Source: Pavona decussata (taxonomy: Eukaryota). From it: 64,000 nt of DNA. A program made the translations under genes and the position numbers. Under the pieces are notes generated by a model. That model did no database searches. It was not told the DNA's origin and was given only the letters and a program-made list of their open reading frames with translations. The stretch covers positions 5,952,001 to 6,016,000 of the forward strand of contig CDRNST010000020.1 in NCBI GenBank assembly GCA_977016875.1, written 5' to 3'. Below, piece by piece: positions 24,801-46,373 of the stretch (position 1 is its first letter; every line of letters begins with the position of its first letter).

Positions 24801-25710
24801 TCATTTTGATCATTTCCCAAAGAAGAAAGGTGTTAACTGAATTATCGTCTGTATATTCTTCCTTTGTCTGCTCGATAGTTTGTTTAATTATGTCAATATA
24901 GCCAGCGTCACTTAATAACGATACATTTAGCTTCCAAAAACCACGACCCCTTGGATTTGTATGCAATGATATGTTCAGTGTTATCAAGGAGTGATCTGTT
25001 TTAAAACCTGGTATGATATCGGCTGAGACAACATTACCCATGAGGTTTTGGGAGACCAGGAAAAAATCTAGTCTGCAATGAACTTCTGGTTGCTTTCGGC
25101 GCCAAGTGTATCTGCTAGTATCTGGATTCAAAAGTCTCCAAGCGTTAACAAGATCAAATTGTTCGGCAATCTCGCACACGGTTTTTCTTGCCTTGTTATG
25201 CGTTCTGGGGAGGCCACCTTTCTTATCTTTCTCTACGTTTAAAACAAGATTAAAATCACCTCCAATTACAACTTCGTCCTTTTGAAAGTCTTCAATGTGT
25301 TCAGCAACAGTTTTAAAGAAATCTGGATCATCTTCATTTGGGGCGTAAACATTTACCAGGGTTACGAGTTTTCCATTTGCCATTAAATCGCATATTATAT
25401 AACGTCCTGCAGGATCAATATAATTTTTCATGATTTGAAGTTCGAAATTGTTGTTGAATAGGATGCCTCTACCTACTTTAGTACTTGACGTGGTGCTAAA
25501 AAGGCATTTGTAGCCCCATTCTGTGGCCCATAGATCTTTTGTTTTTTCAGAACAGTGGATTTCTTGTAGCAAATAGATGGAAAACTGTTTGGAACGCAAC
25601 CAGCTGAAGGTTTCTCTTCTTTTTGTATCATTCCCAAGGCCCCGCACGTTAAGAGAAGCTATTGTAATAACATTCTTTTCCGTTTTGAAAGCAAGTGATA
25701 AAAGCGACAT
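21892..25710 (-). CDS. L1 ORF2p: APE endonuclease + reverse transcriptase + CCHC finger (1272 aa, open)
   Basis: NVRGL, LLQE, VYAPN, GDFN, RLDFF, TDHS; GVRQGCPLSP, QYADD; CSFC...HLFWYC. Confidence 0.97.
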   Translation of the reverse strand: MSLLSLAFKTEKNVITIASLNVRGLGNDTKRRETFSWLRSKQFSIYLLQEIHCSEKTKDLWATEWGYKCLFSTTSSTKVGRGILFNNNFELQIMKNYIDPAGRYIICDLMANGKLVTLVNVYAPNEDDPDFFKTVAEHIEDFQKDEVVIGGDFNLVLNVEKDKKGGLPRTHNKARKTVCEIAEQFDLVNAWRLLNPDTSRYTWRRKQPEVHCRLDFFLVSQNLMGNVVSADIIPGFKTDHSLITLNISLHTNPRGRGFWKLNVSLLSDAGYIDIIKQTIEQTKEEYTDDNSVNTFLLWEMIKMKVREKSVSYAIGKKRKENDREHILEEKIATLEKELDLPSITTQYKNILIEKLELYRKELEEFVRWRTQGAILRCKARWYNEGEKNSKYFLNLEKRHYKLNTTSQLQINENEFITSETGILEECETLYKTLYTSQGNTIPPDREFFQLENDTHLDYHEAASCEGFLTEEECLEALKDMDSEKTPGTDGLPAEFYKTFWDELASSLISAFNYAYDQGTLSVSQRRGIIKLIPKKDADPHFIKNWRPLTLLNCDLKIATKAIANRIKKVIPKLVNNDQTGFLKGRFIGENIRLIDSIINYAAEQHIPGLLLFIDFEKAFDSLEWAFVDRTLEYFGFGPSLISWIRTFYNNIESYVLNNGWSSKFFKLQRGVRQGCPLSPYLFILSVEVLGKAIRANTNIKGITVNKTEIKLSQYADDTTLILNGNKDSLSTALDTINSFGKSSGLKLNDKKTEALWIGSRKGKKEKLSPKKNFKWPEIKTKVLGVWISTDPAVTLNMNYTEKVDKIRNILSCWEYRRLTLIGKIQVIKSLVLSQLTYILTPLATNQSFINEINDIFYRFLWNNKGDKIKRTVLINDYENGGLKMVDLSSFNKSLKTTWIGKYLDTLNQAKWKEIVFLELEKHGGSFIFKGNLNKTDSLKTFPVKNNFTTELLEIWSEVNFEGLIKTKQQFLEQPLWHNSLIRIDNKPIYEKELFLRGILKVKDLMKEPCKFLCFKDFIELYKIQINPLKFCGLISALKCLYNKNFPNESSTDVSVKPDSFLNSFLESSKGNRIVYKKLVSLNSYAPEKSQLKWNTIVSQEGCKADWKAAYTLASKGTKSSTLINFQYRLLHRILPTNFFLTKIGIKQDPQCSFCSKAPENIIHLFWYCPKVSFFWRVLTVKLLECELIPHDYLKDIAIFLGLKPDTTKFALQLNFCFLIARHYIWRCKTSNKVPQLNMFLAVLKSQFKIESYKQAPTSKKWDPLMPLFNNYC

Positions 25711-27033: not shown

Positions 27034-30000
27034 GTGTTGCGCAAATGATTTGTGGAAAAGGCGGCCGGCTATCGAAGCAATGCTCACGCCGCCATCACTT
27101 GACCGAGCAATGTTAAAGACTCAATATTTTTGGTTTAACAGACATGGAGAACACTAAGATGAAGTGGTAGTCATGATATAAAGCCCTGTGTGACATTTAA
27201 TAAACTGTTAGAATTTCAGCAGGAATTTGATATTAGGTCATAAGTCACTTGGAGCCTTATTCCACACCATTCTTCCTTTTGCACTTCTGGCTTTTAGATT
27301 CTCTTGCTGTAAATTTACATGTGCCATATGCTGTGAACAAGGGCCTGCAATTTTCACATTATCTCATTTTTTACACAAGGTGTTACATGTATGTTCTTCT
27401 TTATGGAAGGGGCATTTAGAGAACACTTTTGAAATTATTGCTAGTATTTCACTGATTTAACTAAGGATTTTAACTCTTGTTCAGGCAACTACCTGCAACA
27501 ATGCTGGGTCTGACCTGGACAGTTCTGACTCCTGCACCTCCTGTAGTGATGATACAAGTGATACCGAGAGCCTTGTTGGTGACGAAGATCCTGATATGTG
27601 GAGTGACATACCAGAAGATCATCTCCTTCAAGATATTACAAATGATGAACCGCTTCCAAAGCCTAAGCAACATTAGTCACCTGTACAGGCAGTTACAGTA
27701 ATACTTCAGTGGTTGGTTTATTTTCTGTTATTCTGGCAACTTGGCCTGAAGATTATTATTCAAGCAACTTGCAAGATTAGCGACAATGGTCTGGAATGGT
27801 TGTTGCGCTTTATGTTTCAGTTTCTTCACATGGCAGGTATAAGCTGCAACAATGATTACATCCGTCAAATGGCCTTTATGTTCCCAAGTTCATTGTATCT
27901 TCTAAGGAAATTTATCATGTTTAAACGTGATAACTTTGTTAAGATGGCTGTTTGTTCAAAATGTGCATCACTCTACAACCTTGAAAACTGCACAAGAAAA
28001 GTAGGGGGACAGATTGTCTCAAACATTTGTTCCAACAAACCTTTCAAGAAAGGTAAAGAATGTGGAGTATCATTGGCAAAGAAAGTCATCCTGAGCTCTG
28101 GAAAAGTGTGTTTTTATCCACATAAACTCTACTGTTTTAACAGTGTAATTGATCAGGTTGAAGGATTGTTGAAAAGGCCAGGAGTTCCAGAAATGTGTGA
28201 ACAGTGGCGAGAACGTGAAGTGAAAGAGGACATTTTTGCAGATTTCTATGATGGTGGCATCTGGAAAGATTTTCTTAAATACAAGGGAGAAGTTTTCTTG
28301 GCTGTACCCAGAAACCTTGCCTTTGCAATTAATGTTGATTGGTTTCAACCTTTTAAGAGGAGAAAAGATAGATCCGTGGGAGTCATTTATTTAGTTCTTC
28401 TCAACCTACCCAGGGAGCAACGGTTCAGGTGGGAGAACATCATAGTTGCAGGCATCATACCCGAAATGAGCAAGGAACCTAAATCACTCAATTCATTTTT
28501 GGTACCAATTTTTGTAGATGAATTACAGGCATTGTGGAAAGGTGTCGAACTTTCAACCAGTTTAAGCAATACCCCTCTTACATACCGTGGTGCACTTCTT
28601 TCAGCGGCAGCAGACCTCCCTGCTATACCAAAGCTAGGTGGTTTCAAAGGATATGCGGCACATCGGGGCTGTTCAAAGTGTTTCAAGTACTTTCCTGGAA
28701 GGTTTAAAGACAAGACAGACTATTCTGGTTTTGACAGGGATACTTGGCCCTCAAGACATATTAGCAGTCATAGAATGCATGCAGAAATGGTACGAAAAGC
28801 TTCAACTCAAACACAGCGAGAGCGTCTAGCCACAAAGTATGAAGTTTATTACAGTTCTTTATTACAACTTGAGTACTTTGATGCAGTGAAATTTACAGCT
28901 ATTGATCCCATGCATAATCTGTTTCTGGGAACAGCAAAGCATGTGTTCAAACTATGGACTAAGAAAAACTTGTTAACAAAGAAAGATCTCAAGGTGCTAG
29001 AAGAGCGTATCCACTCCTTTGATGTTGGAACTGGTTTTGGTCGTCTTCCCCATCGTATTGCCTCTAACTATGGTGGTTATACTGCTTCACAATGGAAGAA
29101 CTGGACACTTGTGTATTCAATGTATTGTCTGCAAGGTCTACTTCCTGTATCCATTTGAGATGCTGGCAAACATTTGTCTTTGCTTACCAGTATTTATCTT
29201 CACCAGTTGTTTCTAAGGTTGACATTCTGAAGGCTGATAGGCTGTTTGTAAAGTTTGGGGAACGATTTGAAAGTTTGTAAGACACCAAACATGCACCTTC
29301 ATTGTCACTTGAAAGAATGCATTACTGATTGTGGACCAGTTCATGCATTCTGGTGCTTCAGCTTTGAGCGTTTTAATGGAATTCTGGGATCAATGCAGGT
29401 GAATGGAAGGTCAGTTGAGGTACAGTTAATGAGAAAACTTCTGGCTGGACGATTTGTCTGGGATGCTAAATTTCCTACCGAGTTCAAAGATACCTTTATG
29501 CCTCTTTTTACCCAGGAAAGGAGTGACACTGCTGAAAGTTTAATTGTGGAAAATGCTACTGCACTATTTAATAGTGCATGTTGCTTGAAGTTAGGAGACT
29601 TTCAGTGGAGTGATCTTACGCATGTTACTCTTCCTAGATTATTCAAGCACTTTGCTTTGGATCTTGATGAGCTAAGGGTGCTTCTTCACTGCTACAAAAC
29701 GTTGTATCCTCATGAAACAATTGAACTGCCCTTTTTGTCCAGGGTTGCTAGGAAGTATTCAAACATCATGCTTGGCACTTGAAAAGTTTGGTTCAAAGAT
29801 GGACTGTCGTAATCGGCGCTCAGCTCGAATAATGGCTTCTTGGGCTGCCTCTGATCGCTTGAATGATATTTCTACAGTTAGAAGACCGGGAATAGTAACC
29901 TTCTATATTGTGCACAGTGTAAAGATTAATGAAAAATTTGTTCAGCATGTGTTTGCTGTTGTTTGGTGGAATAAAGGTGATAAAGACCAAGATTTCTTTG

Positions 30001-31827
30001 GAAAACCTGTCCAGGTTTGGAAGTTTGATGAATATGAACCCTGTGGACCTGCTCTTTTTATGCCTGTGCAACGAATTGCACAAAAGTATGCTTGCTGTTC
30101 AGTGACACTACATGGACACACTAAATTAGTAACCAGTCCACTTCCTAGATTGTTTCATTAAGTTTGTGTTGCAGCAGAAGACCTATTGAGTTTAAAGGGG
30201 CTATGCCATGGTGATTGTTACATTTTTGAGCTCAAATAAGAACAAAGGATCTCTTAGTATTATTGCTTAAAACCAAAATTCCCCTAGTTCAAGATATCAG
30301 CTAAGCTATTTTCTCAAAAGGGGAAGATGACCCTGATCTGTATTTGGCTATCTTTACCCAGTACAGGAGAATTTCAAAAAGTTGGCCTCCTTGAAAGCGG
30401 GCGGGTGTCACAAAAATCTGGGACGGCTCTTGGTGAAGAGGGGCATGCTGTACATTTCTTGGTTTGGGGCTTGATTTGGAGCTTGTTGAGTAGAAACAGA
30501 AAGTTCATCCGATGTCACAGCACCAGTTGCTCCAGCGATTGGCCTTGCTGGATTTGATAGACCTTGCAGTTGCTGGTTTTTTTTTTTTTTAGTTCCTTGC
30601 ATTTCCCGGCTATGGACCTGGCAACCAGCCCTCCAGAGGGTGGAAACTCAAAGCTGCCAAACAGCGATATGTCCTTCAGGGTGCCAAGTTTCTCTGGTGC
30701 CTTTTGCCTCTTGATCATCAGTTTCCGGCAGGTGACACTCTTCATTGACTACACAAACAGAAAGCAAATTAAATTGAAGGGGAATTTGAAGGCGACATTA
30801 TCTTAAAATTTTCATGATAGGGTAATAAAAAGGCAGTCAACTCCAACGTCTTTGTTGCACTTAAAATACGCTTACTTTGTTCTGTTTATTACAACCATCT
30901 AGGGGAGGGAAAGAAAAAGAAAAGAGCCACAATGATATAAGTGACAGTACCGTACTACACGTATTTCAATGTCATTGATTTCTTCATATATAATCATGTA
31001 TACCCTATGTGATATTCCCTTATATGGTCATGAACATGTGCTCTCAGACAGAAGAGATGCCATGTTGGATTCTATGTAGAATGAAGTTGTTGTATTCATT
31101 TTTGTCCTGTAAATTAAAAAATTAAAAAAACAACAATATGCTAGTCCCTTTTTGTAATCAACCACTGATAAAGAGCCTGAGATCTCAGAACATAAAGTAA
31201 CATAAAACACTGGTAATCATAGTATAAATCATGATGTTATGCTACATCATGAACACAATTTAAACAATAACAGCAAACTATTCAAGATAAGAACAGGGAT
31301 TTTTCTATTTTTCTGATTTGACCTTGACTCCTTTACTCATACACAAAATGCTTCTATAAAATTCCAAAGGAAAACAAAAAATGGCCAATGCTTTCAAGTT
31401 ACAATCAGTGCAGTGAATAGTCTGTGTTAACAAAACCAGACCACTCTTTGTTGGTTTCCATTGATATGAAGTAAAACTTGCTGCATTTGACAGTGATAAA
31501 GTAGCGTGATAGTGCCCCTTGAAAATTTGTAAAATACAATTGATAAATCATTGTTTCTAGTTGCAACATAAGTAAAAGTGGCAACATATGCAGACGCAGT
31601 AATGTGCTTTTCATTAGATGCTTTCATTCCTAACAAAGGAACAAATGATCCACATGTTACTGCTTATCCATATGTTGCTAAGTGTCTCTAGTGTGAACCA
31701 TGCCTAAAGTTTGCTCAATAGCAGCTGACTCGTCCCCAGTCGTCTCTCTTGTCACGCGTGACGGGGAGCGTAAAGGGTGATGGGAAGGCGGAAAGGAGAG
31801 AGACGACTGGCAGAACCTGTTTTCAAG

Positions 31828-34572
31828 ATGGCGGACAGAATAATGGCGGACGGAGGGGGAATTTCTAATTTTGAAAATAGACCCTTCCATCATGCTTATT
31901 TGGATCGGAAGTTACCCTGCCCTCATATATCTTGCAGAAATGAGGCCGGTAAAGTGTTTTTCCAAGAGATAGGGCTCGCACAACATTTTAGAGTGAAACA
32001 CGCGGCCGTTTCCTTCGACGAAGAAAAATATAATCGAGAAGCGTGGCGGATGTTTAAGTTGTTTCATGGTGAAGAAACTAAGCGACACTTGGATTGGCTT
32101 TCCGCAGAATGCCTACTTCAGGTTTGTTTTTATATTACTTCTCTTGTATGTATGTATGTATTTTACGGTCTAGTTGGCAATGAATATTCATGGTGGAACT
32201 AGTTTTTGTTTATAATTTTCCCACGTCGCAGATTTTTGTTCAAAACTATACCCCTATTTCTTTTTTTTCCTTCAAATAGGGAAGTTGTTACGAACGTTTT
32301 ACTGTTGCGACTGCATATGAAGGTTGCCGAGTCCTTGAACTGGTGGCCAAATCTCCAAGAGAATGTGCCAAGCTAGCAGGCATCATGTTAATGCATTTCG
32401 GTCGACTGAACGCATATGGCAATGGTGCGCCAGAAGTAATCGAGGTCAACAAGCCAGGGCTGGCCGTCCACTTTAATGTCTGGTTCTCCAAACGATCTGT
32501 CAGTGGCAGTGGCAAGTTAATAACAATAGTGGTGCCAGAGGCTATTCTTATCAAACGGGTAGGCGATTCTGTTTCAGTGATACTTGAAATATTTATTTAC
32601 TAAAACAGTTGTCATCTCAGACCAAAATAGATGTCAGTCTTTTGCAAAAAAGGCACAACGTTTGACTTGTTTAGACCAATTAACTGCAGCCAGGGGAAAA
32701 AAGTCCCGCAGATAGGCCTGTTGTTTGCACATTTCTGGAACCGATCCAATAAGATCAAAAGATGGACCTGATATTTAGTTTTAGATATACCCAAGAATGG
32801 TTCCAGAAATGTCCCGTGAAAACACCTGGACCATTTGGATTTCTCCATGTAAATGTATCTTATGTAAATTTATCTTATCATGTAAATTTATCTTATCATT
32901 AATAAGGGTTGCTTTCCTGCAGGACCTTACAGTGGATTCACTACAGGACTGTACCATGCCAGTTGATATTCCAGGAATCGACATTGAACTCTCTGGAAAT
33001 AAGGCACTACACATACTAAGAGGAGTATTTCATTTACAACAATTCAGAGCAAGTCAGCAAGAGGCAATAGAAAGTATTTTAAATGACAAAAATACTGTGC
33101 TGATCATGCCAACAGGTGGTGGGAAAACCATTTGTTATGCCATTCCTGCCCTGATGAAACAGAAAATAACTGTTGTAATTTTTCCCCTGTTGGCACTGTT
33201 GCTTGATCAGGTCGAGCGGATGCGGTCGCAAGGACTCAATGTCTGCTATTTTATGTCTGACATGGATCCTACTGAGAAAGAGAATATCATGCACAAACTT
33301 AATTTGACCCCACCAGAGTACACTTTCTTGTTTCTAACTCCAGAAACTGTCTTGTCACCAACTGTGTTTGAATTAGTGCAAAAATTGTCTGCAAACAATC
33401 TTCTTAATTTTTTAGTTATTGATGAAGCCCATTGTATCGACACATGGGGTTTTCATTTCCGTCCCGCCTATGCAGAGTTATGGAAACTTGGAACTTTTGG
33501 TCGTCCTATTTTGGCAATGACTGGCACAGCAACGAGACGGACAGAGGATGTCATTTTACGCAATTTGAGATTGTCAACAGAAACCAAGGTGATTCGCCAG
33601 TCTGCAAATCGTGCAAATATATTGTATCATGTATTGAACAAAAAGTCAGATGGGAAAGTTGCACTTGTTGAACTCATAAAGAAAGAATATCCAGAGCAGT
33701 GTGGTATTGTCTACTGTGCTGAAAGGAGCGAGACTGTGGATGTTGCCTACTGTCTTCAAACAGTGGGAATCAATGCTGTCTTCTTTCATGCTGGCATGGA
33801 TGTCATTACCAAACAACAAACTGTTGAAAGATGGAAATCGGGAACTGCCCATGTCATGTGTGCTACAGTGGCATTTGGCATGGGTATCGACAAGCCAAAT
33901 GTTCGATTTGTTATCCACCACAGTGTGCCAAAGGATTTGGAGAGTTATGTACAGGAATCTGGAAGGGCTGGTCGGGATGGCAATGATGCACATTCGTACA
34001 TCCTTTTTCGGTTTGAGGACAGAACAAAACATTTGAGGAACATTTCGTCTCTTCCCAACAGTGACCGCAAAATCATTTGTCTAGATGGGCTTAATGATGT
34101 GGTTAAATACTGTATAACCCCTGTTTGCAGAAGGCAACAAATAGTGACCTACTTTGATGGTAGTGATATCTCTGGCAACCCATGCAACAAGTCATGCGAT
34201 GTCTGTTCTGCAAACAAACATTTTGCCTCTGTGGACCACAGTGAAGATGCAATTGAGGTTATAAATTGCCTTGAATCAATGCAGCAACTTCATGAGAAAG
34301 TCACAACAAAGTTTTTGGTGCTAACCCTTCGAGGGTCAAAGGCAAACACTGTAACTAGTAAGGGATTTCAAAATGTAAGAGAGTATGGGGAGGGAAAAAC
34401 TAAATTTAGCGAGAAGGAATTACTGAAATTCATACAATACTTAATCACTGAAAGTATTTTACATGAACAGCTGCGCCCTGTAAATGAGAACAGTACCACG
34501 CCTTATCTTGTGAAAGGAACCAATGCTAACAAACTCATCAGCAAAGAAATCAGGTTTTCTTTCTATAAATAA
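31828..34572 (+). CDS. Transposon-borne RecQ-family helicase with N-terminal C2H2-like finger (3 exons, ~740 aa, intact)
   Basis: Exons 31828-32121, 32280-32558, 32923-34572, all GT-AG and phase 0. CPHISC...HFRVKH; MPTGGGKT, DEAHC, WGFHFRPAY, ATVAFGMGIDK, QESGRAGRDG, CRR...CNKSCDVC, then an RQC winged-helix-like region. Confidence 0.93.
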
Positions 34573-34753
34573 TTACGTGTTTTAATAGTGAAATTTTGTC
34601 TTGAGGCTTAGCGAAAAATGATAATGACATAAGATACATTGTAATTTGTATTCTAATTTCGTTTGTTGTTTTTGTTAAAGCCTGAGAGCCACGTTAAAAT
34701 GTACATATTTATTTCATTAGCAAGTAGGCACCTTTTGTGCCAGCTGGCATAAT

Positions 34754-34924
34754 AGGCCATTTCCGAGTTGTTTTGAAACTCATTATTAAAGTGAGGCTTC
34801 GTGCATAGTTTTTGTTAAGAAAATTAGTTTTCATTCATATGCAAACAATACTAATTTTCTTAACAAAAACTATGCACGAAGCCTCGCTTTAATAATGAGG
34901 TTCAAAGCAACTCGGAAATGGCCC
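34754..34924. mobile_element. Palindromic MITE with AT TSD, inside AcademH
   Basis: AT|AGGCCATTTCCGAGTTG ... CAACTCGGAAATGGCCC|AT, nearly a full hairpin. Confidence 0.85.
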
Positions 34925-36964
34925 ATTGAATGTGTGAATTAACTAGATACAATATACTTGCTTCACAGGCTTTGACTCAAGTGAGTGTGTACAGTTTCCT
35001 CCCATCACTTCTAATGCGAAAATATTTGATTTTTAGTAACGTACCCCGTCCAAAGAACGCTTGTTATGCTAATTTACCAAATGTTAATGTTGTTGCTGTG
35101 TGTACATTTCTTGAGAGGAATGGTCATTCTATGTATCTGGGCTTGAGACCAGCTGGAAATATGATTTTCCAGGCGGATTTAAAAACTGCCAGGGGTGTCC
35201 TTGCAATTGACCACTGTGGTCGAGATATGAGCTCTCTCCGCAGAGAAACCAGAGCCTTACTTCATTCTCACTGACTCGACCTTGAGACCTTGAGACCTCT
35301 CATCCCGCAGGATTACCACACTAATTTCTCACACCCCTTCTTCCACATCCTCATCCAGTTCATGGTTGCTTGGGTTTTCACCCTCTGGGAGAACATGAAA
35401 AGTGCTATACAACTTGCGCCCAAAGTTTTCAGTCACTTTGCTTTTGCCCTTCTTGTACACGTCTACCAGTGTGTTGGAAACCTTGCCATTTTCTTCACCC
35501 TTGTTTGAGAGCTTTGGAATGAAGTCTTGATCTCCAGGAGGATCTAAGAACTTCTGTTTGAGGCAGAACCACATTCCCTGCAGTTGATCTGGAAAAGGGT
35601 CTTGCTCACTGTGGTGAGTAGTGGGATGAACATTGAAAGCCTCGTGCCCTCCAAATGCATTTCGTACTGCTCCAAGGCAATCCAAGTTGACTGCAAGTAG
35701 CTTGAGAACTTCCACACTTGAATGTCCTAACAATAACATGAAGGAAAAGTTGAATCTATTCTTCTCTGGGGGGGGGGGGGGGGGGGCATAAGAGAGCATT
35801 ATTATTTTTTGGAAAAGAGGGTGAGGAATCTGGCTCTGTCTAATTTTCCATGTGATCACAAAGCTCCTGCTTCAAGATGATATTCATGTCACCTGCATCT
35901 TGTGACAAAGACTTCAATAGGAGACCAGTCTTCAGGGCCAATTAAAAATAAGAATGTGTAACTTACCTGATGCATAATTCTTCAGTGGTTGCACCAAGTA
36001 CGCCTCCACCCATTCATCAAGTGCAATGTTGTGACCGTCCTTCCCTTTCACATTAACAGAACAGTTGTGCTGCAACACCTTCCGGGTCACACTAGGCCAG
36101 GCTGCGATAAAATTTACAACATGGACAAAAGCTTCTGTCCAATAATTGCGTTTCTGCAGCTGAGCAAACAGTGGTAGCATTACCATCCAAACAGCTTCAC
36201 GACCAACACCATCGCCAAACTTCACACTGGACAGGTACAATTCTCTTAAGGGACCAAAGAGGGTAAATAGCTGGCTATGGTAACGGAACTGGACTTTTCT
36301 GCTCTCAGATTCTAACCATTCCTTGAAAGAACTCAACAACAGTTCATGATGGTTTTCATTAGTTTTGTCATGAGCAGCAAGTGAGGCCTCGGATGGAAAC
36401 AATTCACTCTCTTTAAAGGTCTGCACTGCAGCCAGTCCATAGGCCATTGCCACATCCCGTACTGCTTCGTCTATTCTGTTGAGGTTCTGGTGCTGAAATT
36501 TCTTGTCTCCAAATGCATCATCTGTTACCTTGTCTCGCTTCATCACAGTCTGTGCGACACACATGAATCCCCCAGGCCCCATAGTTTTCTTGCACACCTC
36601 ATAAAGGTAACCTTAGAAATAAAAGAGGAAAACGTCTTAAATTTGAATGGTTCTTGCAGCTGGACAAGTCTCCTATTCTTTACCATTTCAATTTGATATT
36701 TTGGATTAGCAATGCACAGTATGAAAATTAATCCTTTCTGGCTTGCTATATCAGTGGATAATGCCCTTGGCTGAGACTGATGGTCCTTACGATTTGACAT
36801 TTGCCCTTAAAGCTTCACATTTTTTGGACCACCACATCGCGGGTATTGTCAATATACAAGCCGCCTGAAGGAATTACTGTCTTCGCTAAATACCCAGCTT
36901 TCACTTGTGGAATAAATGTCAATCATCATACAACTGTAGCCAACCTACAGAAACCATTTTTATA

Positions 36965-37079
36965 CTGACCCTTCCTAAGTCATCTCTCTTGTTGGGAAAT
37001 GCAAAGCGCGAAGGGTGATGGGAAGGAAGAAAGCGTGATACGTCATGCGAGAAAAGAGAGACGACTGGGGCCGAGTCAG
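36965..37079. mobile_element. 115-bp MITE of the AcademH family, in a transposase intron
   Basis: Ends are decayed copies of the host TIR; subterminal motif GCGCGAAGGGTGATGGGAAGG; flanks ATTTTTATA / GTTTTTATG (7/9). Confidence 0.8.
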
Positions 37080-39674
37080 GTTTTTATGGATAAATGGTTT
37101 GTGTATTATGATTGTAATCGAGAATTGGAAAAAGGGATTATAGAGTCCAGGCTGTCTGTACTCTTGTGAATCTAGCTTAAAGGCATACACCAGAAAACCA
37201 ACACAGACTCAATTCCCGAGAATGAGTCAGGTTAGTTGTTTGATAGTTTGCATGTGTCTTACCTCTAGCATGTAAATCTCCAGGAACCTCTGCTGCCCAT
37301 CCATATGCTGACAAGGACTTTTCTTTCACGCTTCTGGTGATCTTGTTGGTGCCCTGGTCACCAACAAGAAGTGTTTTGCAACTCTTTGAGCCTCTGCTGT
37401 ACACTTTGTCTTCATCGTCTGGTCCAGGAAAATGATCAGCAACAGGGGGATCAGTTGTGGCAAGTTCTGTTGCCTCCCAAACTTTCAAATCCTCTTCATC
37501 CTCTTGAGCCAAACTGTTTTTGAGTAATTGGCTGATATTAGCCAGTCCCAATTTGTCTGCAATTTGTTTCGGTCCTGGTACTGACGAGAAAAACTCGTTG
37601 TTGCAAATTGCAAAATTCTCCAGTAGAATTTTCACCATTTGTTCATCTCCCTTTAAAACGGCTAATGTCAGTGGAGTTGCTCCGCACCTCTCCTTTACAT
37701 TGGGATTAATCCCAGCATTTATCAGGGTCTGTACTAATGGCACATTTCCATTCTGAACAGCATGGTGCAGTACAGTGCATCCATGATGATCTGTGGCATT
37801 CTCCCACTGTTCACGGTTGTTGCGCAGATATTGCTTAAATTCAACAGCAGCTGCTGCATCAACTGATTGGTTTGCTTGCCACATTTTGTCTGTTAGTTTT
37901 GTAAAAACTTTCTTAAATTTCCCATCAATTTTCTGGAATGTGCTTGCATTAGCCATGTTGTTTGACTCATCTTCAGCTTCTCTGTCACCGTCTTCTTCCA
38001 AAATTCCTCTGTCAACATCAGGGATTTGTTTTTCAACACGTGCCAATTGTTCTTCAAGCTGAACCATTTGATTTTTATGTTCTTGAAGCAAGTAAAGAAA
38101 CTCGTGATGCTTCCTCGCAGCTTCGATGTTGAAGGTCTTCAGATTCTCGTCATATGGCAAAACCACTTTCGAATGATTGCACGGCATGCCAAATTCTTTA
38201 CCAAAATGTTCAAGTACTGCAGCTGTTCCAGTTATGGTGGCATTGTTTTCAATGGAAAGAGGCAGGGTGATCGTTTTACTTTGTCCTTGGTTGTTCTTTT
38301 TGGGCACTGGTTGTTTAAGCTTGTATTTCTTCAAGTTGCTTTTGCTGAGGTCCTGTTTCTTCAACCAGGTTTTGAACTCGTGTTCACTCATGGCAGCAAT
38401 GGGTTTCTCTGACAAAGGGACTGAATTAAGACCAACATCAAGCAGCTTTGTGAAGTATTGATCTTTAGCCTTTTCAAACACTTCCAGCTGGACAGGATTT
38501 GAATCTAAAAACAACAGAAACTGCCTTTAATCAATGCAAATGTACAAATTTGCCATGTTCATTTAAAAAATTGCCACAGAAAGTATAATAATACATGTAA
38601 TTGCTAGGGCTGTGCTCTAGCAGTGACCAGGACTGCAGACTTCTAGAAACCCCACATTTCTTAATAAAGAGTCTCTCTGTGATTGTTTTGATGGCACACC
38701 CTTGGATGATACACAATTATTGTACGTCATGTACTTATATTAAATTAATTGACAAATTTCTGAAATAAATAAATAAATAAATAAATAATATATTGAAATT
38801 AGAAATTTGAGGTTAATAAAGGGAGAAGAGCCATGGAAAAATCCCTCAGGTTCACAAAAAAGTCAGAATTTAACACTTTATTTCAACGTACCAATGAGGA
38901 GATCATCAGCAGTTAACAGTGAAACTGGTCTCTGCGGTTCTTGCGAGGCTTCTTTATCAACTAGCAAATCCTCAAATGCATCGCAATTGGGAATGATGGC
39001 ACCACGGATAGTGAAGTTCCACATCTTTGGTGCTGTAGACCTGAATAGTCTCTGATGGCGTGCTGTACCTCTGTACATGTTGATGTTGTCCATCAGCAGC
39101 ATAACTGGAATTTCATTTGGAGCATGTTTCGCCAAGATTTCTGTGTAATTTTCCAGTCGTTTTTTCAAGTAATTTTTTCTGCAAAAAAAGGGTTAACATT
39201 TATTAGGTCATAGTTAAGTAAGAAACTGTGGGCAGTGTATGTGTTGTGATTTAATAGAATTTTTCAAGCCGGTTTCAAATCAATTTTAATTTTCCCATGT
39301 TAATTACCATAACCTGGAACAAAGGGAAATAAAATTAATCTGGTTTGTAAAATTTCGAACCACATGTGCTGATTCAAATATAGTGTAAGTAATAATCCTG
39401 ACTCATCTCCAGTTATCATTTTTGTTGGATCAAACAAACAAGGTATGATGAGAACCATCAGCTCTTTATTCACTAACACCTGTGCCTCCTAACAAAATAG
39501 TCATTTTACAGCCAAACTTTTACAGCCACCATTTGTTTGCATTGTTACTCGCCAAGACCAGGGTCTCTCCAGTCATGTTTCATATTAAATAATCATTTCT
39601 ATCTAACCTCAGGTATTGGACATGTTCTTACATAATGATTGAGTGATACCATACGTGTTGTCCCAGTACTTATA

Positions 39675-39809
39675 TATTTTTTGTGGTTCAATTTTATCCT
39701 TGGTTTAAATTTTATTTCCCTTTGTTTTGAGGTATGGTAATGTATGATAATGAGTTTAAAACAATGGGAAATAAAAATTAAACCAGGGATAAAATTGAAC
39801 CACAACATA
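39675..39809. mobile_element. Palindromic MITE
   Basis: TTGTGGTTCAATTTTATCC ... GGATAAAATTGAACCACAA. Confidence 0.75.
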
Positions 39810-41166
39810 TTCAATACTTGTTACAGAGGGAAGGGGTTTTTACTTACATAGACACACTTAATAGTGAATAATTATTTCTAAATAAAAAGGTAACTCACAT
39901 GGAATCATAATGAAGAGACAACCCAATTGACTGGAGCATGTTGATGAACTGTTTCCCTGCCCCATATGACATGCAGAGTAGGCCAAATAGAAGTGGGAAG
40001 TCGTTGCGACATTTTGAATTTCTGACATTCAACAAGAGAGCCAAGGCATGGTGTCCACGGAGCACTTTCTGTTCATTTGTTTTTTTAACATTTCTTTCAC
40101 CAGTAGGGTTGCTAACAACCAAAGTCTCCACGATATTCCTCAGCAAGGGGCATCTTTCCTTGACAGCATCAACAAATTCTTTAAACATTGATGTGATGAG
40201 TTCATCCACATCTGAATATTGTAAGCTTCTAATACCAATGTTGCAAATGCCTTCCAGGATTTTAATTTCTTGGGCAATTCGTTCTGTTTGCTGTATGGTC
40301 AACTTTGCATTTTCAACATCCTTTGCTTGGGCCAGTTCTGCCTCGAAAGCAGTCAGCAGTGTCTTCATAAGACGGTCTCTTTCTTGTGCCTCTCGAGTAA
40401 ATTCTGCCAGGAGCACTTGAACTTGTAGCATACCCTGAGTGGCAATGGATAACTGCTGCCAGATTTGTGTCATGACTTCTTCAGTTGCTTGAAGTCTCCG
40501 CTGGATATTGACCATCTCAGCTGTGAGAAAGAATTCCAAAGATAAATGTATATTTAAAAATAAAAACTGAAATTTTTTAGCTACAACACCAAAGTTTCAA
40601 TACATAAACACATCATGTGCTGCAAGAAGTTTTGTACCCATGATAAAGAGTTCCTGTTTTGCATGACCCAGTTCAGATCACCTGTAACAGCAATGTCACA
40701 TTTGCATTTACATGTACTTGGGTTATGAAGGAAAATAGAGTCAAAATTTAGAAAGTATCAGGAATATCTTTTTAAACAATGATAGGATTAAATCAATGGC
40801 ACCAAACAATAAACTTTAATATGTGTTTACATCACCCATTGTTCATTGTTTGGTACAAAAATTCGTCAATAAATGTTATACAGTACCTGGCAATCCAGTT
40901 GTACACTCAGCATTAGTGCAAGATATAAAATGAGACTTGGCTTTTAGATTGACGTAAAAGGTTCTACAAATGCAGTTAAGGCATCATAACAATTTACCAC
41001 AACTTGCATTAATATCAATTACAAATATTCAATAAGCTGGAAAGAAAATTAAGTAGCACTGCATGTAAGAGGTTTATAACAAAAACAACAAGGCCACAGC
41101 TCTGGGCAAAATCAGAAAATATAATTAATGTAGGTGTCATTTCATTCACACTCCACTCTGCACAGG

Positions 41167-41274
41167 CTGACCCCAGTTGTCTCTCTCAGTGAGAAGAGGA
41201 GTGATTGGAAGCATCACTTTTTGTGCTGCCCTGACCACACTTTCTTTTAAGAGAGACGACTGAGGACGAGTCAG
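41167..41274. mobile_element. Second AcademH-family MITE
   Basis: CTGA-CCCCAGTTGTCTCTCT ... AAGAGAGACGACTGAGGACGAGTCAG; TSD not clear. Confidence 0.7.
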
Positions 41275-42060
41275 CCTACACGCCATGTTCCAGCAGGAGA
41301 GTGGTCGTGTAGTTTTGTACTCCAGTTGACACTTACATACTATAGACTATGACACAAATTGTCACCAATTCATCAGTTGTAACCGTTAGCATCATTTTAG
41401 AATACTTAAGACAGAATTAACCAACACTGTGAAATGAGAAAAGCTCATTTGAAACCTTTGTAACTTTATCCGCCCACAAAATAATTTCAAAAGATGAAGA
41501 GACAATACATCGAGACAAAAACTTCCTTTGTTAGCAATTTTCGGAACTATGTTAAACAATCGCCCATCTTTGTAAAGAAATCCCAATGGAAATGCTTTCT
41601 GGCCAATTGGAACCTCAGATTTTTGTGAGTAATTATGCAAATGACAAGGATACGTTCCATCTTCTCTCCTACGCCTGGTTGATACTGTAGGAAATACACG
41701 TTTCAGGGTGCGTGTAACTAATGGTGCTGATGCTTCATCAAGGGCAACATAGGCCAACACAATTTCCCGACTGACTTCACATCCTTGCTCCTCCACAAAT
41801 CCAGTAGTTAAATAGCACTCTAGTTTGGAGCTTCTTTGTTTTACTTCTTTGCCAGATGGTTTACCACCTGAAACATTGGAGCAAGATTAGCCTGGTCACT
41901 TATTTACACTGAGTTCTGATAAGGCAAATAAGACAAATAATCCATGGTACGAGTATTGTCTGAATATTATTCATTGTTATTTCTGTCACATTTAAATTTC
42001 ACACCAGTTATATTTTCAATGTCTCAGGTTCTGTGAACTAAGAATAATACAAATTAACTG

Positions 42061-42177
42061 GGCTGAGTTGCTCGAAGCATGGTTAGCGCTAACCATTAGT
42101 TAAGAGGTATTAAAACCTATAGGTTGTTATGGTAATTAACCCGGGTTAGCGCTAACCATGCTTCAAGCAACTGGGCC
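42061..42177. mobile_element. Harbinger-like MITE
   Basis: Inverted arms AGTTGCTCGAAGCATGGTTAGCGCTAACC; CTG on both flanks. Confidence 0.8.
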
Positions 42178-42252
42178 CTGGGCTGTAAAATTTCAAACCA
42201 TAAAAAAGTTATTCCTTCCCCAGTCTCTATTTTCAGTTATCATACATTAAAC

Positions 42253-42517
42253 GAATACTGGTCAACTCGCCTACGTGCAAACTCGCCTATGCCAACTCAC
42301 CTACGCCTACTGGTTAACTCGCCTACGTAGGCGAATTTAGAACATAGCACGCTTGTTTAGGTTTATGGATTAAAGAACGAGTTAGATAGAACATAAAGTT
42401 ATTTAAAAGGCATACATTACTTGAGTGAACTCGCCTATGTCAGGAAGAGAAGTCGCCTACGTAGGCGAGCTGACAGGTTGTAGGCGAGTTTGCACGTAGG
42501 CGAGTTGACCGGATACC
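42253..42517. mobile_element. MITE with internal ACTCGCCTAC repeats
   Basis: Inverted arms GGTCAACTCGCCTACGTGCAAACTCGCCTA; flanking direct repeat CATTAAAC (TSD 6-8 bp, ambiguous). Confidence 0.75.
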
Positions 42518-44951
42518 CATTAAACATAACGAAACACAAAGGATATCGAATAGATCGAATACAAAGACAAAGGACAGCAAAGGAAATTAAGTAGGAAATA
42601 CTAGTACTTGGGTTACCAACAAGAAAGCGTTTTGACTTGGGCTGACTTGGGTTCTGTTTCGAACCATGCTTTGTGCCCCTTCTACTGTCATCTTTGTCGC
42701 TGCCGTTTTGTGAACGATCAAAATGGCATGCCAGCCTTCTCCTCGCTTTCACAGGCGTGCTTGATGATGGCACACGAGGTTCATCATCTATACGGAAAGA
42801 AATCACACCTTTGCCTTTCAACTAGGCTTTAAAATCTGCAACAAGCAACTGTGTATAAGCCTTAATATGAAATGTATTACCATATGTATTATTTTTATAT
42901 ACATACCACAAATACTAAGCTCGTCTATGGAGTCATTCAGTTCTTGCAATGTGTCTTGCAACGTGCAATCTTCCTGGCCTCCGGACGCCATCTTGGATTT
43001 TAAAAAAGTTTCGCCAAAATACTTCTAGTTGCGACACAGATCACAAAAACACGTCAACTTGGCCAGTGAATCGTTATTGAACGCATCTAAGGCGAAAGGA
43101 ATCGCTGAAACGCCTTCGCACAACTTTTCGACTCTTCTCGCAGCTTTTCGACTCAAGATCTACCAGTCGTTTCTCTCTTTCCCTTTCCTCCTTCCCATCA
43201 CCCCTTGCGCTTCGCTTTCTTCCCTCCCATCACTCTTCGCGCTCTCCGTTTCCCAACAAGAGAGACGACTGGGGACGAGTCAGCAATAGCAGTAAGATAT
43301 AACACTTAACAAATGCATAGAACCACTTGCTTGAAGAATTCTTCAATGGAGAATGTTTTTTACAGACCAAAGAATACAACTTTAATATGTGTGTACATAC
43401 CCCAATTAAAGTTACCGTGTACGTTCAGGGAAAAAAATTTTGGATTTTCGTTTTTTTTTATGGAAATAAACTTTCCAATAAGATCTTTCGAATAAAAAGA
43501 AAACTTTTTGAAAAAGAGTGAATATTTGCCCAGAAATTGGGATGAAAGCGATTTCCACCGGAAGTTAAACTCCACTTTGATTGACAGCACGTTGCTGCCA
43601 ATGTAACCGCCCTGTGCGATTATCGTGCGAAGTTTTGTTTACACTGTAGCCGCCATTAGCTGAGTGGTTGTACTTATAGAAAGTCTTCCTCAGATCCATC
43701 CGTTGTTGTACTGAAAATCATTCAATAATGCTGCTGAGGCATGGAATCCCACAAGCCATGGAAGTGTCCGTGGACAAGTTCCAAAAAACGGACGGAAAAA
43801 GAGAAAAAGTAAAGGAAAAGAATGCATAGATGAAGAAGTGAGACGAGGTCTTTCAGAGTCCAACAAAGGTTCCTACTATCAGGAGTGGTCCTCGGATACT
43901 CCTGAAAAACAGGACAGTTGTGGAGCCAGTAGGCAGACGCTTCTTGGGATCGAAGAAAGAGGCTCGGTCAAGATTTGGACCGATCTTGACAACACTAGTA
44001 CCGGTGACAGTGATTCATCAGATGACTGAGAAGAAGATGATGACACCGTAGGTGACGAATCTTTGCTAGAGACGCTCAACTTTCTCGATGCTGAGCTTCT
44101 CCAGGATGCCTTGAAGGAATCTGCCATTTGCAGAGACTGCAAAACTAGTGAATTAGAGCTTTTGGAGGAGAAGGAAACAAGGAGTGGGCAAGGGCAGGTT
44201 TGGGTTCTTCGATGTAAACATGCTGACTGTAAACCGCACAAGCATCCAATGCGTTTTCACACATCACCGAAGAATTCGCGATTTTACGATGTGAATCGCG
44301 CCATCGTTTTGGCCTTTAGAGCGATAGGTCATGGCTATTCAGCAGCCCAAAAGTTTTGCAGCATTGTTAACTTGCCAAATCCAGTAGGGAAAAAGCCCTT
44401 GTCTCAGCATACAAAGGCGATCTTGAAAGTCGCAGAAGCAATGCTTGAGGAAGAACTCTGTGATGCTGCCTTTGAAGTGAAAAAAATTCTCAGGGATGTG
44501 GGAGACATCGAAGATTGTTCGGATGACGCACTAAAAGAAAAACTAGCGGATGCTGGTGCAAGTTTTGATGGTTTGTGGAGCAGCAGGGGCTGGACAGGGC
44601 GCGATGGCCTTGTGGCTGCAATCTTGGTCGAATCGGGCAAAGTTGTGGATGTTGTGTATCTGAGCAGTGCATGCAACCAATGCACAAAAATGGAAGAAAA
44701 AAGGAAACGCGGGGAAATTTCGAGGCGACAGTTTACAGAATGGTATCTAGGCCACGATGAAAACTGCTTCATGAACCATGAAGGAAGTTCAGGGGTAAGT
44801 TTACGAATTGTTTCATTTTTTGTTTATCCTTTGCTCATGAGGGGCACATATTTTTAATAATTGTATGTGAATTCTAGTTTTAGCCCTTTTATCTCTTTTC
44901 ATATGGATGATTTCTCGTTTCTCGATTTCTTATAATTTAGCTTTTTAGATC

Positions 44952-45052
44952 TATGTTTTTTTGTTTTTGTTTTTGTTGTTTTGTAACGCAGGACCCATGT
45001 TGATAGCAGTTTTTATAACTGAAATGCTCATCCTGCATAAATATGTTATTAC

Positions 45053-45089
<37 letters not shown>

Positions 45090-45182
45090 GTGATTGTGAT
45101 TGTGATTGTGATTGTGATAGTGATTGTGATTGTGATTGTGATTGTGATTGTGATTGTGATTGTGATTGTGATTGTGATTATG

Positions 45183-45235
<53 letters not shown>
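44952..45235 (+). repeat. LINE-like 3' end followed by compound microsatellite (ATT)n(GTGATT)n(ATT)n
   Basis: Direct reading; explains the poly-Ile/Val/Thr ORFs. Confidence 0.75.
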
Positions 45236-46373
45236 GAGTTGAACATTCCAGGCTTGCATTTGATTGATTCTCGGCTTGATTTTCGGTGTGGGTTTCAAGA
45301 GTTTAGTAAGAATGTGACTTGAGATATTGAGGGGTATCCTAGGGCAGTGGACTTAGCATTCAGGTATTATGTTGTTGTTTTTTTTTCCATATAAAGCCAA
45401 CTAAAACATAATCAGTAGAGTAGAGTTTTAACACTGCTGCATTGAAGTAGTACACACATCAGACTGTATTTCATATTGCCTGTGGAAGCTAAGGTCTGGA
45501 TTATTATTCACAGACTTGTTATTTCAACTTCTGTTTTGAATTCACTTACCTTAGAAGGATTAATTTTTAATAGCCCCCAAGTGGCAAATGGTTTCCAGGT
45601 ACTGTTTTTCAAATACAGCTGTAGCAGTAATTATTGTTATTTCCGGATTAAACGTATCAAAACCTTAGATGACTGTTGATCTGAAATATGATTATTCTGA
45701 GCTGCCTCTTTACGTTTTTTTTTTTTTTGAAGAACCAACGTACAAATTCTAATTTAATCTGACATGGCCAACATTAGCTCTTTTGGCCTTGGACTAAGTA
45801 AATAATTTATGTGCACATGTTATTACATGTCTTTGTAGGCAATGGAAGTAGAAGGTGCTGTGCGCATTTATCAGTGGTCAGAAGAGAAACACAAGCTCCG
45901 TTGCATCCCATATGTTGGTGATGGCGACAGTGAAAGCTACACCATAGTGAAGAATGCAGCTCCTTATGGACCTGCAGTATACATAGACAAAGAGGAGTGC
46001 ATTGCTCATGTCACAAAGAGGATGGGGTCCAACTTGAGAGCTCTTGTAAATAAATATAGTGGTAAGCTACAACAATGATAAATTTTCACCTATTTGTTAT
46101 CATCCTGTTTCCACCTCATTTCAGTATAATTGGAAGTTTATGCTTATTAGTTTGCCAACAGGTGCACAAATGTACCTCCTAGTGTCACCCACACCTGTGC
46201 GCAACAGACATGCAGCTACTTGAAATCATGCAGGTCATAAAAAAGCCAGTCATATATTTAACAATTTATTATACCACGTGTGCACGTTGGATATAAGATG
46301 ATAGATAGCCAATGAGGTGCACAGTGCCGAGTTTGCTATAATCATCTAATATCCAACAAGGGCAAGTGGAATA

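Follow-up and report, generated by a model that had tools for sequence, protein, structure and literature searches.

The 64,000-nt stretch of the Pavona decussata genome analysed here (contig CDRNST010000020.1; hereafter the window) raises the question of how ankyrin repeats, a protein-binding fold, come to lie in one open exon with the catalytic core of a DNA transposase, and whether they are a working part of it. Our analyses show an insertion domain that marks a lineage of AcademH, a known type of transposon, and is under selection; the explanation which fits the whole of the evidence best, and which we regard as highly probable, is that the ankyrins are a real and selection-maintained part of the AcademH transposase, likely acting as a docking arm. 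The open reading frame (ORF) at 37177-38514 (-) is free of stop codons and contains DHHGCTVLHHAVQNGNVPLVQTLINAGINPNVKERCGATPLTLAVLKGDEQMVKILLEN exactly as it was first quoted. Pfam ankyrin repeats were found at residues 239-303 of this ORF (Ank_4, 3.1e-15; Ank, 1.1e-12; Ank_2, 3.4e-12), with scores of 56.4, 47.9 and 47.2 bits that lie well above the curated cut-offs (22.7, 21.1 and 27.3, respectively), and a sequence search of the Protein Data Bank (PDB) aligned the FFSSVPGPKQIADKLGLANISQLL stretch behind the canonical pair as a third, though degenerate, repeat. The same ORF carries the N-terminal part of DUF6589 (residues 45-118, profile positions 39-107), and the next minus-strand ORF downstream (35932-36597) matches profile positions 283-360; DUF6589 scored 39.1 bits on the exon with the catalytic Glu motif (cut-off 27), 19.1 bits on the N part of the ankyrin exon and 53-58 bits in homologues. 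The original prediction, made from the sequence alone, had described the ankyrin peptide and a degenerate third repeat at 37520-37791, in an exon at 38504-37263, behind a coiled-coil/acidic segment and between the motifs LMDNIN and LVGDQGT. These claims held well: the repeat span agrees with ours (37513-37800), the spliced contigs give the exon as 38504-37261 (within 2 nt), the segment before the repeats is helical and acidic, and the motifs do flank the ankyrins, with LMDNIN in the upstream exon and LVGDQGT downstream in the ankyrin exon.

The ankyrin exon lies within a complete AcademH transposon at 31725-43283 (11,559 bp; minus strand by its transposase gene, with the helicase gene on the plus strand), whose limits coincide with sharp limits of identity to a second copy on contig C90, the flanks being unrelated. 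The element is bordered by a 9-bp target-site duplication, CAATAGCAG, at 31716-31724 and again at 43284-43292, and it ends in 28-bp terminal inverted repeats, of which the left one at 31725-31752 (+), CTGACTCGTCCCCAGTCGTCTCTCTTGT, is a perfect reverse complement of the right one at 43256-43283 (-). Inside these ends, the main ORF of a convergent RecQ-like helicase (32797-34572, +) carries the Pfam domains DEAD, Helicase_C, RecQ_Zn_bind and RQC. The C90 copy is 98.7-99.3% identical across 31725-43283, with similarity breaking sharply at both ends, and it has the same perfect 28-bp inverted repeat and a 9-bp duplication of its own, ATTTCGCAG. In both copies the transposase exons examined and the helicase ORF are all open, and at the protein level the ankyrin exon is completely identical between them. 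According to PMC10045372, which cites Kojima (2020, Mobile DNA 11:15), AcademH elements encode a DUF6589 (Academ-type) transposase and a RecQ-like helicase and generate target-site duplications of 9 or 10 bp; the DUF6589 transposase, the co-encoded superfamily-2 RecQ-like helicase and the 9-bp duplications of both copies therefore identify the element as AcademH in the sense of that summary. The window element is thus an intact, recently mobile AcademH DNA transposon, and its family is apparently active, judging from two 99% identical copies with open frames and spliced transcripts. The C90 copy has, in addition, a 391-bp insertion (G000:C90 ~1287443-1287833, corresponding to window 38602-38611) in the intron that precedes the ankyrin exon, and all of its exons stay open. 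Separately, a 178-bp segment at 34751-34927, between the convergent 3' ends of the two genes, aligns with the C90 copy in the opposite orientation at 90% identity, which suggests an inverted duplication between the transposase and helicase gene ends.

Perfect 28-bp ends and 9-bp duplications in the window copy, a 99% identical copy at an unrelated site and the presence of divergent and decayed copies are hard to reconcile with a domesticated host gene, that is, a transposase-derived ankyrin protein serving its host rather than a transposon. The same can be said of the lancelet copy: it and its helicase both fall within the interval annotated, on the opposite strand, as a host immunoglobulin (Ig)-domain gene. 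Domestication is therefore a very slim prospect, although the locus is transcribed and spliced and the lancelet homologues appear in RefSeq as ordinary genes, one under the automatic name 'BARD1'.

The transposase gene model rests on contigs from four public runs (three studies), placed on the locus as spliced pieces; the runs are presumed to be RNA, for which the loss of canonical introns in the contigs argues. The introns run GT..AG on the minus strand, and a single contig of 3229 nt spans four junctions. In the direction of transcription, all on the minus strand, a further upstream exon ending at 41654 (a loose contig end at 40963 maps to 41654-41683) is followed by an exon at 40887-40963, by one at 39899-40520 with a coiled-coil and a helical N-terminal region (collinear with residues 185-387 of the lancelet homologue described below), and by one at 38892-39178 with beta1, beta2 and the first catalytic Asp (LMDNIN; codon 39088-39090), in which MDNINMYRG...PKMWNFT is kept in 24 homologous exon ORFs. 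The ankyrin exon (37261-38504, 1244 nt) encodes beta3 and alpha1, then the insert, then beta4, which brings the second catalytic Asp, and finally beta5; the second Asp codon (VGDQGT; 37357-37359) is invariant in 18/18 aligned homologues and falls at the end of beta4 in the structural model. The next exon (35966-36609) encodes an all-helical insertion domain and the catalytic Glu (LDEWVE; codon 36013-36015), which corresponds to lancelet Glu1102 at the start of a helix in the model, and the last coding exon (35329-35725; stop codon 35329-35331) is collinear with lancelet residues 1118-1226. The reading frame is kept across every junction, both splice junctions of the ankyrin exon included, so that the LMDNIN, ankyrin and Glu-motif exons are one frame, and the five exon translations examined are free of stops. 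The ankyrin module is part of the mature transposase reading frame, which bears out the original view of an in-frame transposase part. One of the introns contains a stretch of about 130 bp (39681-39810) at which contig depth reaches 95-196 against about 18 for the exons and from which many contigs continue into unrelated sequence; this is probably a short, widely transcribed repeat of a MITE- or SINE-like kind (miniature inverted-repeat transposable element or short interspersed nuclear element).

To locate the ankyrins within the catalytic fold, the exons were analysed one by one, and an intronless ORF that occurs naturally in a lancelet was used in place of the complete window protein. This homologue, XP_078591192.1 of Branchiostoma floridae x japonicum (1243 aa, one uninterrupted ORF), is collinear with the window exons, and its alignment breaks at the RNA-defined exon borders. 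Residues 385-1135 were modelled with AlphaFold from a 65-sequence alignment, in which 24 database exon ORFs and three exon pieces (from the window and other loci) cover the first-Asp exon; the mean predicted local distance difference test (pLDDT) score was 86 and the predicted template modelling (pTM) score 0.83. The model runs from beta1 (413-422, with Asp417) through beta2 (437-447), a helical excursion, beta3 (555-562) and alpha1 (569-582) to the insert (583-867), and continues with beta4 (868-872) directly before Asp873, beta5 (894-898), an all-helical domain and a helix from Asp1101/Glu1102. It thus has the order beta1-beta2-beta3-alpha1-beta4-alpha2-beta5 of an RNase H-like DDE fold, with one Asp on beta1, one Asp after beta4 and the Glu on a later helix. 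The sole non-ankyrin structural match among 48,161 PDB representatives was the strand-transfer complex of the P element transposase (6p5a_A; Z 11.7, root-mean-square deviation (rmsd) 4.7, 279 aligned residues), and its alignment covers model residues 7-737, reaching across the insert. Taken together, the element order and this match place the ankyrins in the alpha1-beta4 loop of an RNase H-like fold, as had been proposed, so that, as modelled, an insert of ~270-285 residues occupies a surface loop ~10 residues before the second Asp. The distance from the first to the second catalytic Asp is 448 aa in the window and 456 aa in the lancelet homologue, whereas it measures 167 and 176 aa in AcademH copies of this genome that have no ankyrins, whose first motif reads VNDNLN, TFDNFD and similar and whose second reads GGDQLT or AGDLLG. 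In addition, the match to the DUF6589 profile ends near position 107 ahead of the insert and, in homologues, is taken up again at 105-107 behind it, and it is unbroken in the ankyrin-less copies.

Pfam DUF6589 starts after the DNxN/D motif, and an earlier model with a shallow alignment over the first-Asp exon left that region unresolved (pLDDT <50); a Foldseek search matched this earlier model to ankyrin proteins only. The start of the profile and the unresolved region speak for a different assignment, in which the first Asp has been misidentified and the ankyrins lie between the N-terminal and catalytic domains, outside the fold. With 27 exon sequences added, however, the motif folds as strand beta1 at pLDDT >80, the P element alignment spans both sides of the insert, and ankyrin-less copies keep the motif at the usual distance from the second Asp; misassignment is accordingly improbable.

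Measured against ankyrin-less AcademH, the whole insert occupies approximately 37387-38160 (-), which are ORF residues 119-376 (258 aa), and the Asp-Asp spacing implies the somewhat larger figure of extra residues given above. It begins with a long conserved helix (38020-38130; aa 129-165; helix 221-250 of the model; mean identity to the window 0.47), continues with a poorly conserved acidic linker (37936-38019; aa 166-193; mean identity 0.17; low pLDDT) and then with a helical hairpin (37801-37935; aa 194-238) that stacks on the ankyrins as extra N-terminal repeats, the structural alignments beginning at about model residue 287. The two canonical repeats and the third, a degenerate cap, follow at 37513-37800 (aa 239-334), where Pfam, the PDB sequence search, the model and the selection estimates given below coincide, and a variable linker (37387-37512; aa 335-376; mean identity 0.19; dN/dS 0.12-0.50) leads back to the catalytic fold. 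Because alignments to ankyrin domains of four to five repeats start inside the hairpin, hairpin and repeats can be read as one solenoid, and in the model they are one, of the ankyrin type and ~130-150 residues long, with paired helices at residues 342-429 and Z scores of 12-13.7 to solved ankyrin domains over 287-435. The top structural matches were the peptide-binding ankyrin domains of ANKRA2/RFXANK and KANK1 (Z 12.9-13.7 over ~130 residues, rmsd 2.9-3.6), which share only 16-18% identity with the module and score no better than dozens of further ankyrin domains. Unlike the module, they stand alone or at the end of a protein and are not inserted in the loop of an enzyme.

Conservation within the insert is strongly uneven. 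In an 18-sequence alignment, mean identity to the window was 62% for the ankyrin repeats and 68% for the second-Asp block, against 45% for the N-terminal core and 17-19% for the two linkers. Repeat positions that are invariant across families 31-69% identical include Glu275, Cys277 and Gly278, the first two of which lie in the finger loop of repeat 2. Nei-Gojobori estimates of dN/dS (the ratio of nonsynonymous to synonymous substitution rates) for the ankyrin segment were 0.094 between the window and a 69% identical relative, 0.126 between two Branchiostoma species and 0.146 between two further relatives, values that are similar to those of the core and below those of the second linker in 2/3 pairs. 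These comparisons show purifying selection on the ankyrin module, which is conserved like the catalytic block.

The arrangement is by no means confined to the window. Ankyrins occupy this position beside DUF6589 in about 48 database proteins (31-69% identical); carriers include the corals Desmophyllum pertusum and Paramuricea clavata and the lancelets B. floridae x japonicum, B. lanceolatum and B. belcheri. A profile search of 1.84 billion representatives returned mostly giant ankyrin proteins and yielded the full-length lancelet protein. Within this genome we found four ankyrin-bearing families, named after contigs: the window/C90 family; the C15 family, which is intact, 38-43% identical and provided with its own helicase; and the C104 and C67 families, which are both broken. 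The C67 family (L020, G000:C67:3216000-3225900) is the most divergent of the ankyrin-bearing ones at 28% identity, with stops and a reverse-transcriptase-like insertion that splits it. Intron content is variable in the clade: the window gene has at least six introns against none in the lancelet genes (single ORFs at L036:10001-13732 and L037:3001-6864), the intron between the ankyrin exon and the next is also missing in the C15 family and in many database homologues, and the C67 copy apparently has none between the first-Asp exon and the ankyrin exon.

The genome holds more than 100 places with DUF6589, and a search with a hidden Markov model of the module found no ankyrin module within 3 kb of the ~15 ankyrin-less AcademH loci fetched from it. 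These loci are taken as AcademH too because a convergent helicase was present at 8/8 of those tested, and the other ankyrin-bearing loci (C15, L023, L036, L037 and L038) likewise combine an ankyrin-bearing transposase with a convergent RecQ-like helicase in 5/5 cases. The RQC domain was found in the helicases of four cnidarian-type ankyrin-bearing elements (window 32797-34572, L015:2366-4084, L023 and L038) and was undetected in eight ankyrin-less AcademH helicase ORF pieces tested (among L016-L019, L024, L028 and L031-L033), with no record for the lancelet helicase; this contrast may reflect divergence or a real domain difference. For the lancelet element, a search for inverted ends gave no convincing pair. 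A maximum-likelihood tree was computed from the region after the second Asp with the insert columns excluded; it is unrooted and comprises sequences of this genome and database homologues only. All 20 ankyrin-bearing sequences fall on one side of a branch with an SH-aLRT support of 98, which is indicative that the ankyrin-bearing elements are one clade of helicase-encoding AcademH, present in cnidarians and Branchiostoma, and is compatible with a single gain of the insert in the ancestor of that clade. The distinct lineage proposed at the outset is thus upheld. Neutral evolution of the segment, together with its absence from sister copies, had been named in the original prediction as what would speak against the module; the low dN/dS and the module's presence in the C15, C104, C67 and lancelet families contradict both.

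Ankyrin domains bind proteins, and a convergent RecQ-like helicase stands at every ankyrin-bearing locus examined; both observations would suit a module that recruits the element's own helicase to the transposition complex, the helicase being, beside a host factor, one of the two partners originally proposed. The in-frame module of that proposal stands, and the recruitment of the helicase is mildly disfavoured, since the helicases of ankyrin-less AcademH in this genome are of the same kind (8/8), so that working with the helicase does not generally require ankyrins. When the module, taken as residues 180-335 of the exon-3 translation, was co-folded with residues 50-591 of the helicase ORF, the score was 0.02 against a mark of 0.34; this counts neither way, and we consider helicase recruitment unlikely. 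Somewhat better placed, and still doubtful, is the possibility that the long helix and the solenoid hold the transposase protomers together in the paired-end complex without any external partner: the insert starts with a conserved 30-residue helix and adjoins both beta4 and the second Asp, and in other DDE transposases insertion domains help to build the complex, but the ankyrin-less relatives presumably assemble without an insert. As these relatives use the same kind of helicase and presumably multimerise, the arm most likely adds something new.

Our preferred proposal, that the solenoid is an arm docking a host protein, would have the following form. The insert was probably acquired by the ancestor of one AcademH clade in the alpha1-beta4 loop, where the solenoid would serve as a protein-docking arm held beside the active site; the arm would bind some conserved protein of the host, for instance a factor of chromatin or of repair, and this binding could govern where or when the element cuts and pastes. 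Repeat positions which remain invariant at ~30% identity, in hosts of two phyla, fit a conserved host partner better than a co-evolving, element-encoded one. Provided that the module is functional, a host chromatin or repair factor setting target or timing is a tentative first choice to which we would give somewhat less than an even chance, and we infer that it ranks above self-assembly, which in turn ranks above helicase recruitment. A bolder version, drawn by analogy, is that the arm, like the ankyrin domains of TONSL, BARD1 and SLF1, might read a conserved chromatin or repair mark on newly replicated DNA, that excision would be timed to S/G2, and that the helicase would help to copy the element back from the sister chromatid, so that cut-and-paste would become a net gain. 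TONSL, BARD1 and SLF1 are DNA-repair proteins which read unmethylated histone H4 Lys20 through ankyrin domains of three to four repeats, a similar size. The SLF1-H4 complex (8pef) was among the matches of the module (Z 10.5, rmsd 2.0, 101 residues) and was no better than generic ankyrins; no TONSL, BARD1 or SLF1 chain was among the best 60 PDB sequence matches of the module, and only one of the three acidic residues of the BARD1 pocket would seem to have a counterpart in it. This version is a speculative one with little chance of being right.

Several observations weigh against a selected docking arm in the catalytic fold. The contigs match the C90 letters at 7/9 sites that differ from the window copy, so the transcripts prove expression of the element family, not that of the window copy itself. 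The protein that was folded is the lancelet homologue, ~31% identical over the ankyrin exon, and its fold was assigned by element order and structural match, not by the spatial meeting of the three acidic residues. The dS values of 0.7-1.6 are partly saturated, which makes the dN/dS ratios rough. No binding partner emerged, and in the structural comparisons the module matched generic ankyrin domains, all within 1 Z unit of one another, which indicate no ligand; the PDB sequence search likewise returned consensus-like ankyrin matches with no specific relative of the module, and an ESM Atlas look-up gave generic ankyrin clusters only. Finally, one gene model of D. pertusum, OS493_007270 (P0020), lacks repeats 1-2 in a gap of ~86 residues and matches the window exon on either side of the ankyrins at 63% and 73% identity; either a deletion in this copy or an artefact of the gene model would explain it. 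This last model, together with the fact that transposons do capture host fragments, would suit the reading of the ankyrins as a neutral passenger, a host-gene fragment that was picked up and has no role. Such a passenger would hardly show dN/dS of 0.09-0.15 in three pairs and a conservation equal to that of the catalytic block, nor would it have been kept in four families of this genome and in lancelets, and we give this reading the least credence of all.

In comparison with known systems, the window element resembles AcademH in its DUF6589 DDE transposase, RecQ-like superfamily-2 helicase, terminal inverted repeats and 9-10-bp duplications, and its clade differs in the insert of helices and ankyrins before the second Asp. 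To our knowledge, the only modules described in Academ so far are the helicase and an XPG nuclease, to which the original prediction added a PHD module. Our literature search found no paper that links Academ/DUF6589 transposases with ankyrin repeats, the original AcademH paper and the 2011 catalytic-domain survey lying outside its reach. Given how common the clade is among cnidarians and lancelets, the insert is probably present, uncommented, in some Repbase AcademH consensus proteins, in which case the sequence would be less novel and its recognition still new. The P element transposase and THAP9 (6p5a) share with the window protein an RNase H-like fold into which a large functional domain has been inserted. 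The GTP-binding insertion of the P element comes after the second Asp, where the window protein has its own all-helical domain; it differs in this from the ankyrin insert, which precedes the second Asp and is a repeat protein-binding fold. The transposases of hAT, Transib/RAG1 and piggyBac also have additional domains, with a part in the reaction, set into loops of their RNase H-like fold; these are found between the second Asp and the Glu, and they do not consist of ankyrin repeats. We know of no characterised transposase that uses the alpha1-beta4 loop for an insertion domain.

Other mobile elements are found near the AcademH element in the window. A LINE-type (long interspersed nuclear element) ORF of 1272 aa at 21892-25710 (-) is open and carries endonuclease, reverse transcriptase and zf-RVT domains, and a 481-aa ORF at 27713-29158 (+) matches Transposase_21 (tnp2, CACTA-like). 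Just outside the right end of the AcademH element, a Mutator-like transposase in at least two ORF pieces lies at 44063-46078 (+), with an AT-rich microsatellite at about 44951-45298 between the pieces.

Academ is among the least studied superfamilies of eukaryotic DNA transposons, and we know of no member that has been studied biochemically or structurally. The transposase described here is an unusual fusion of a catalytic fold with a ready-made protein-binding domain in one of its loops. For annotation, it is a warning that transposon copies in lancelets are listed as ordinary genes, in one case under the name of a repair protein. Should the arm indeed bind a host factor, it would add a new case to the ways in which a cut-and-paste element chooses its target or its timing, and it could offer a handle for engineering.

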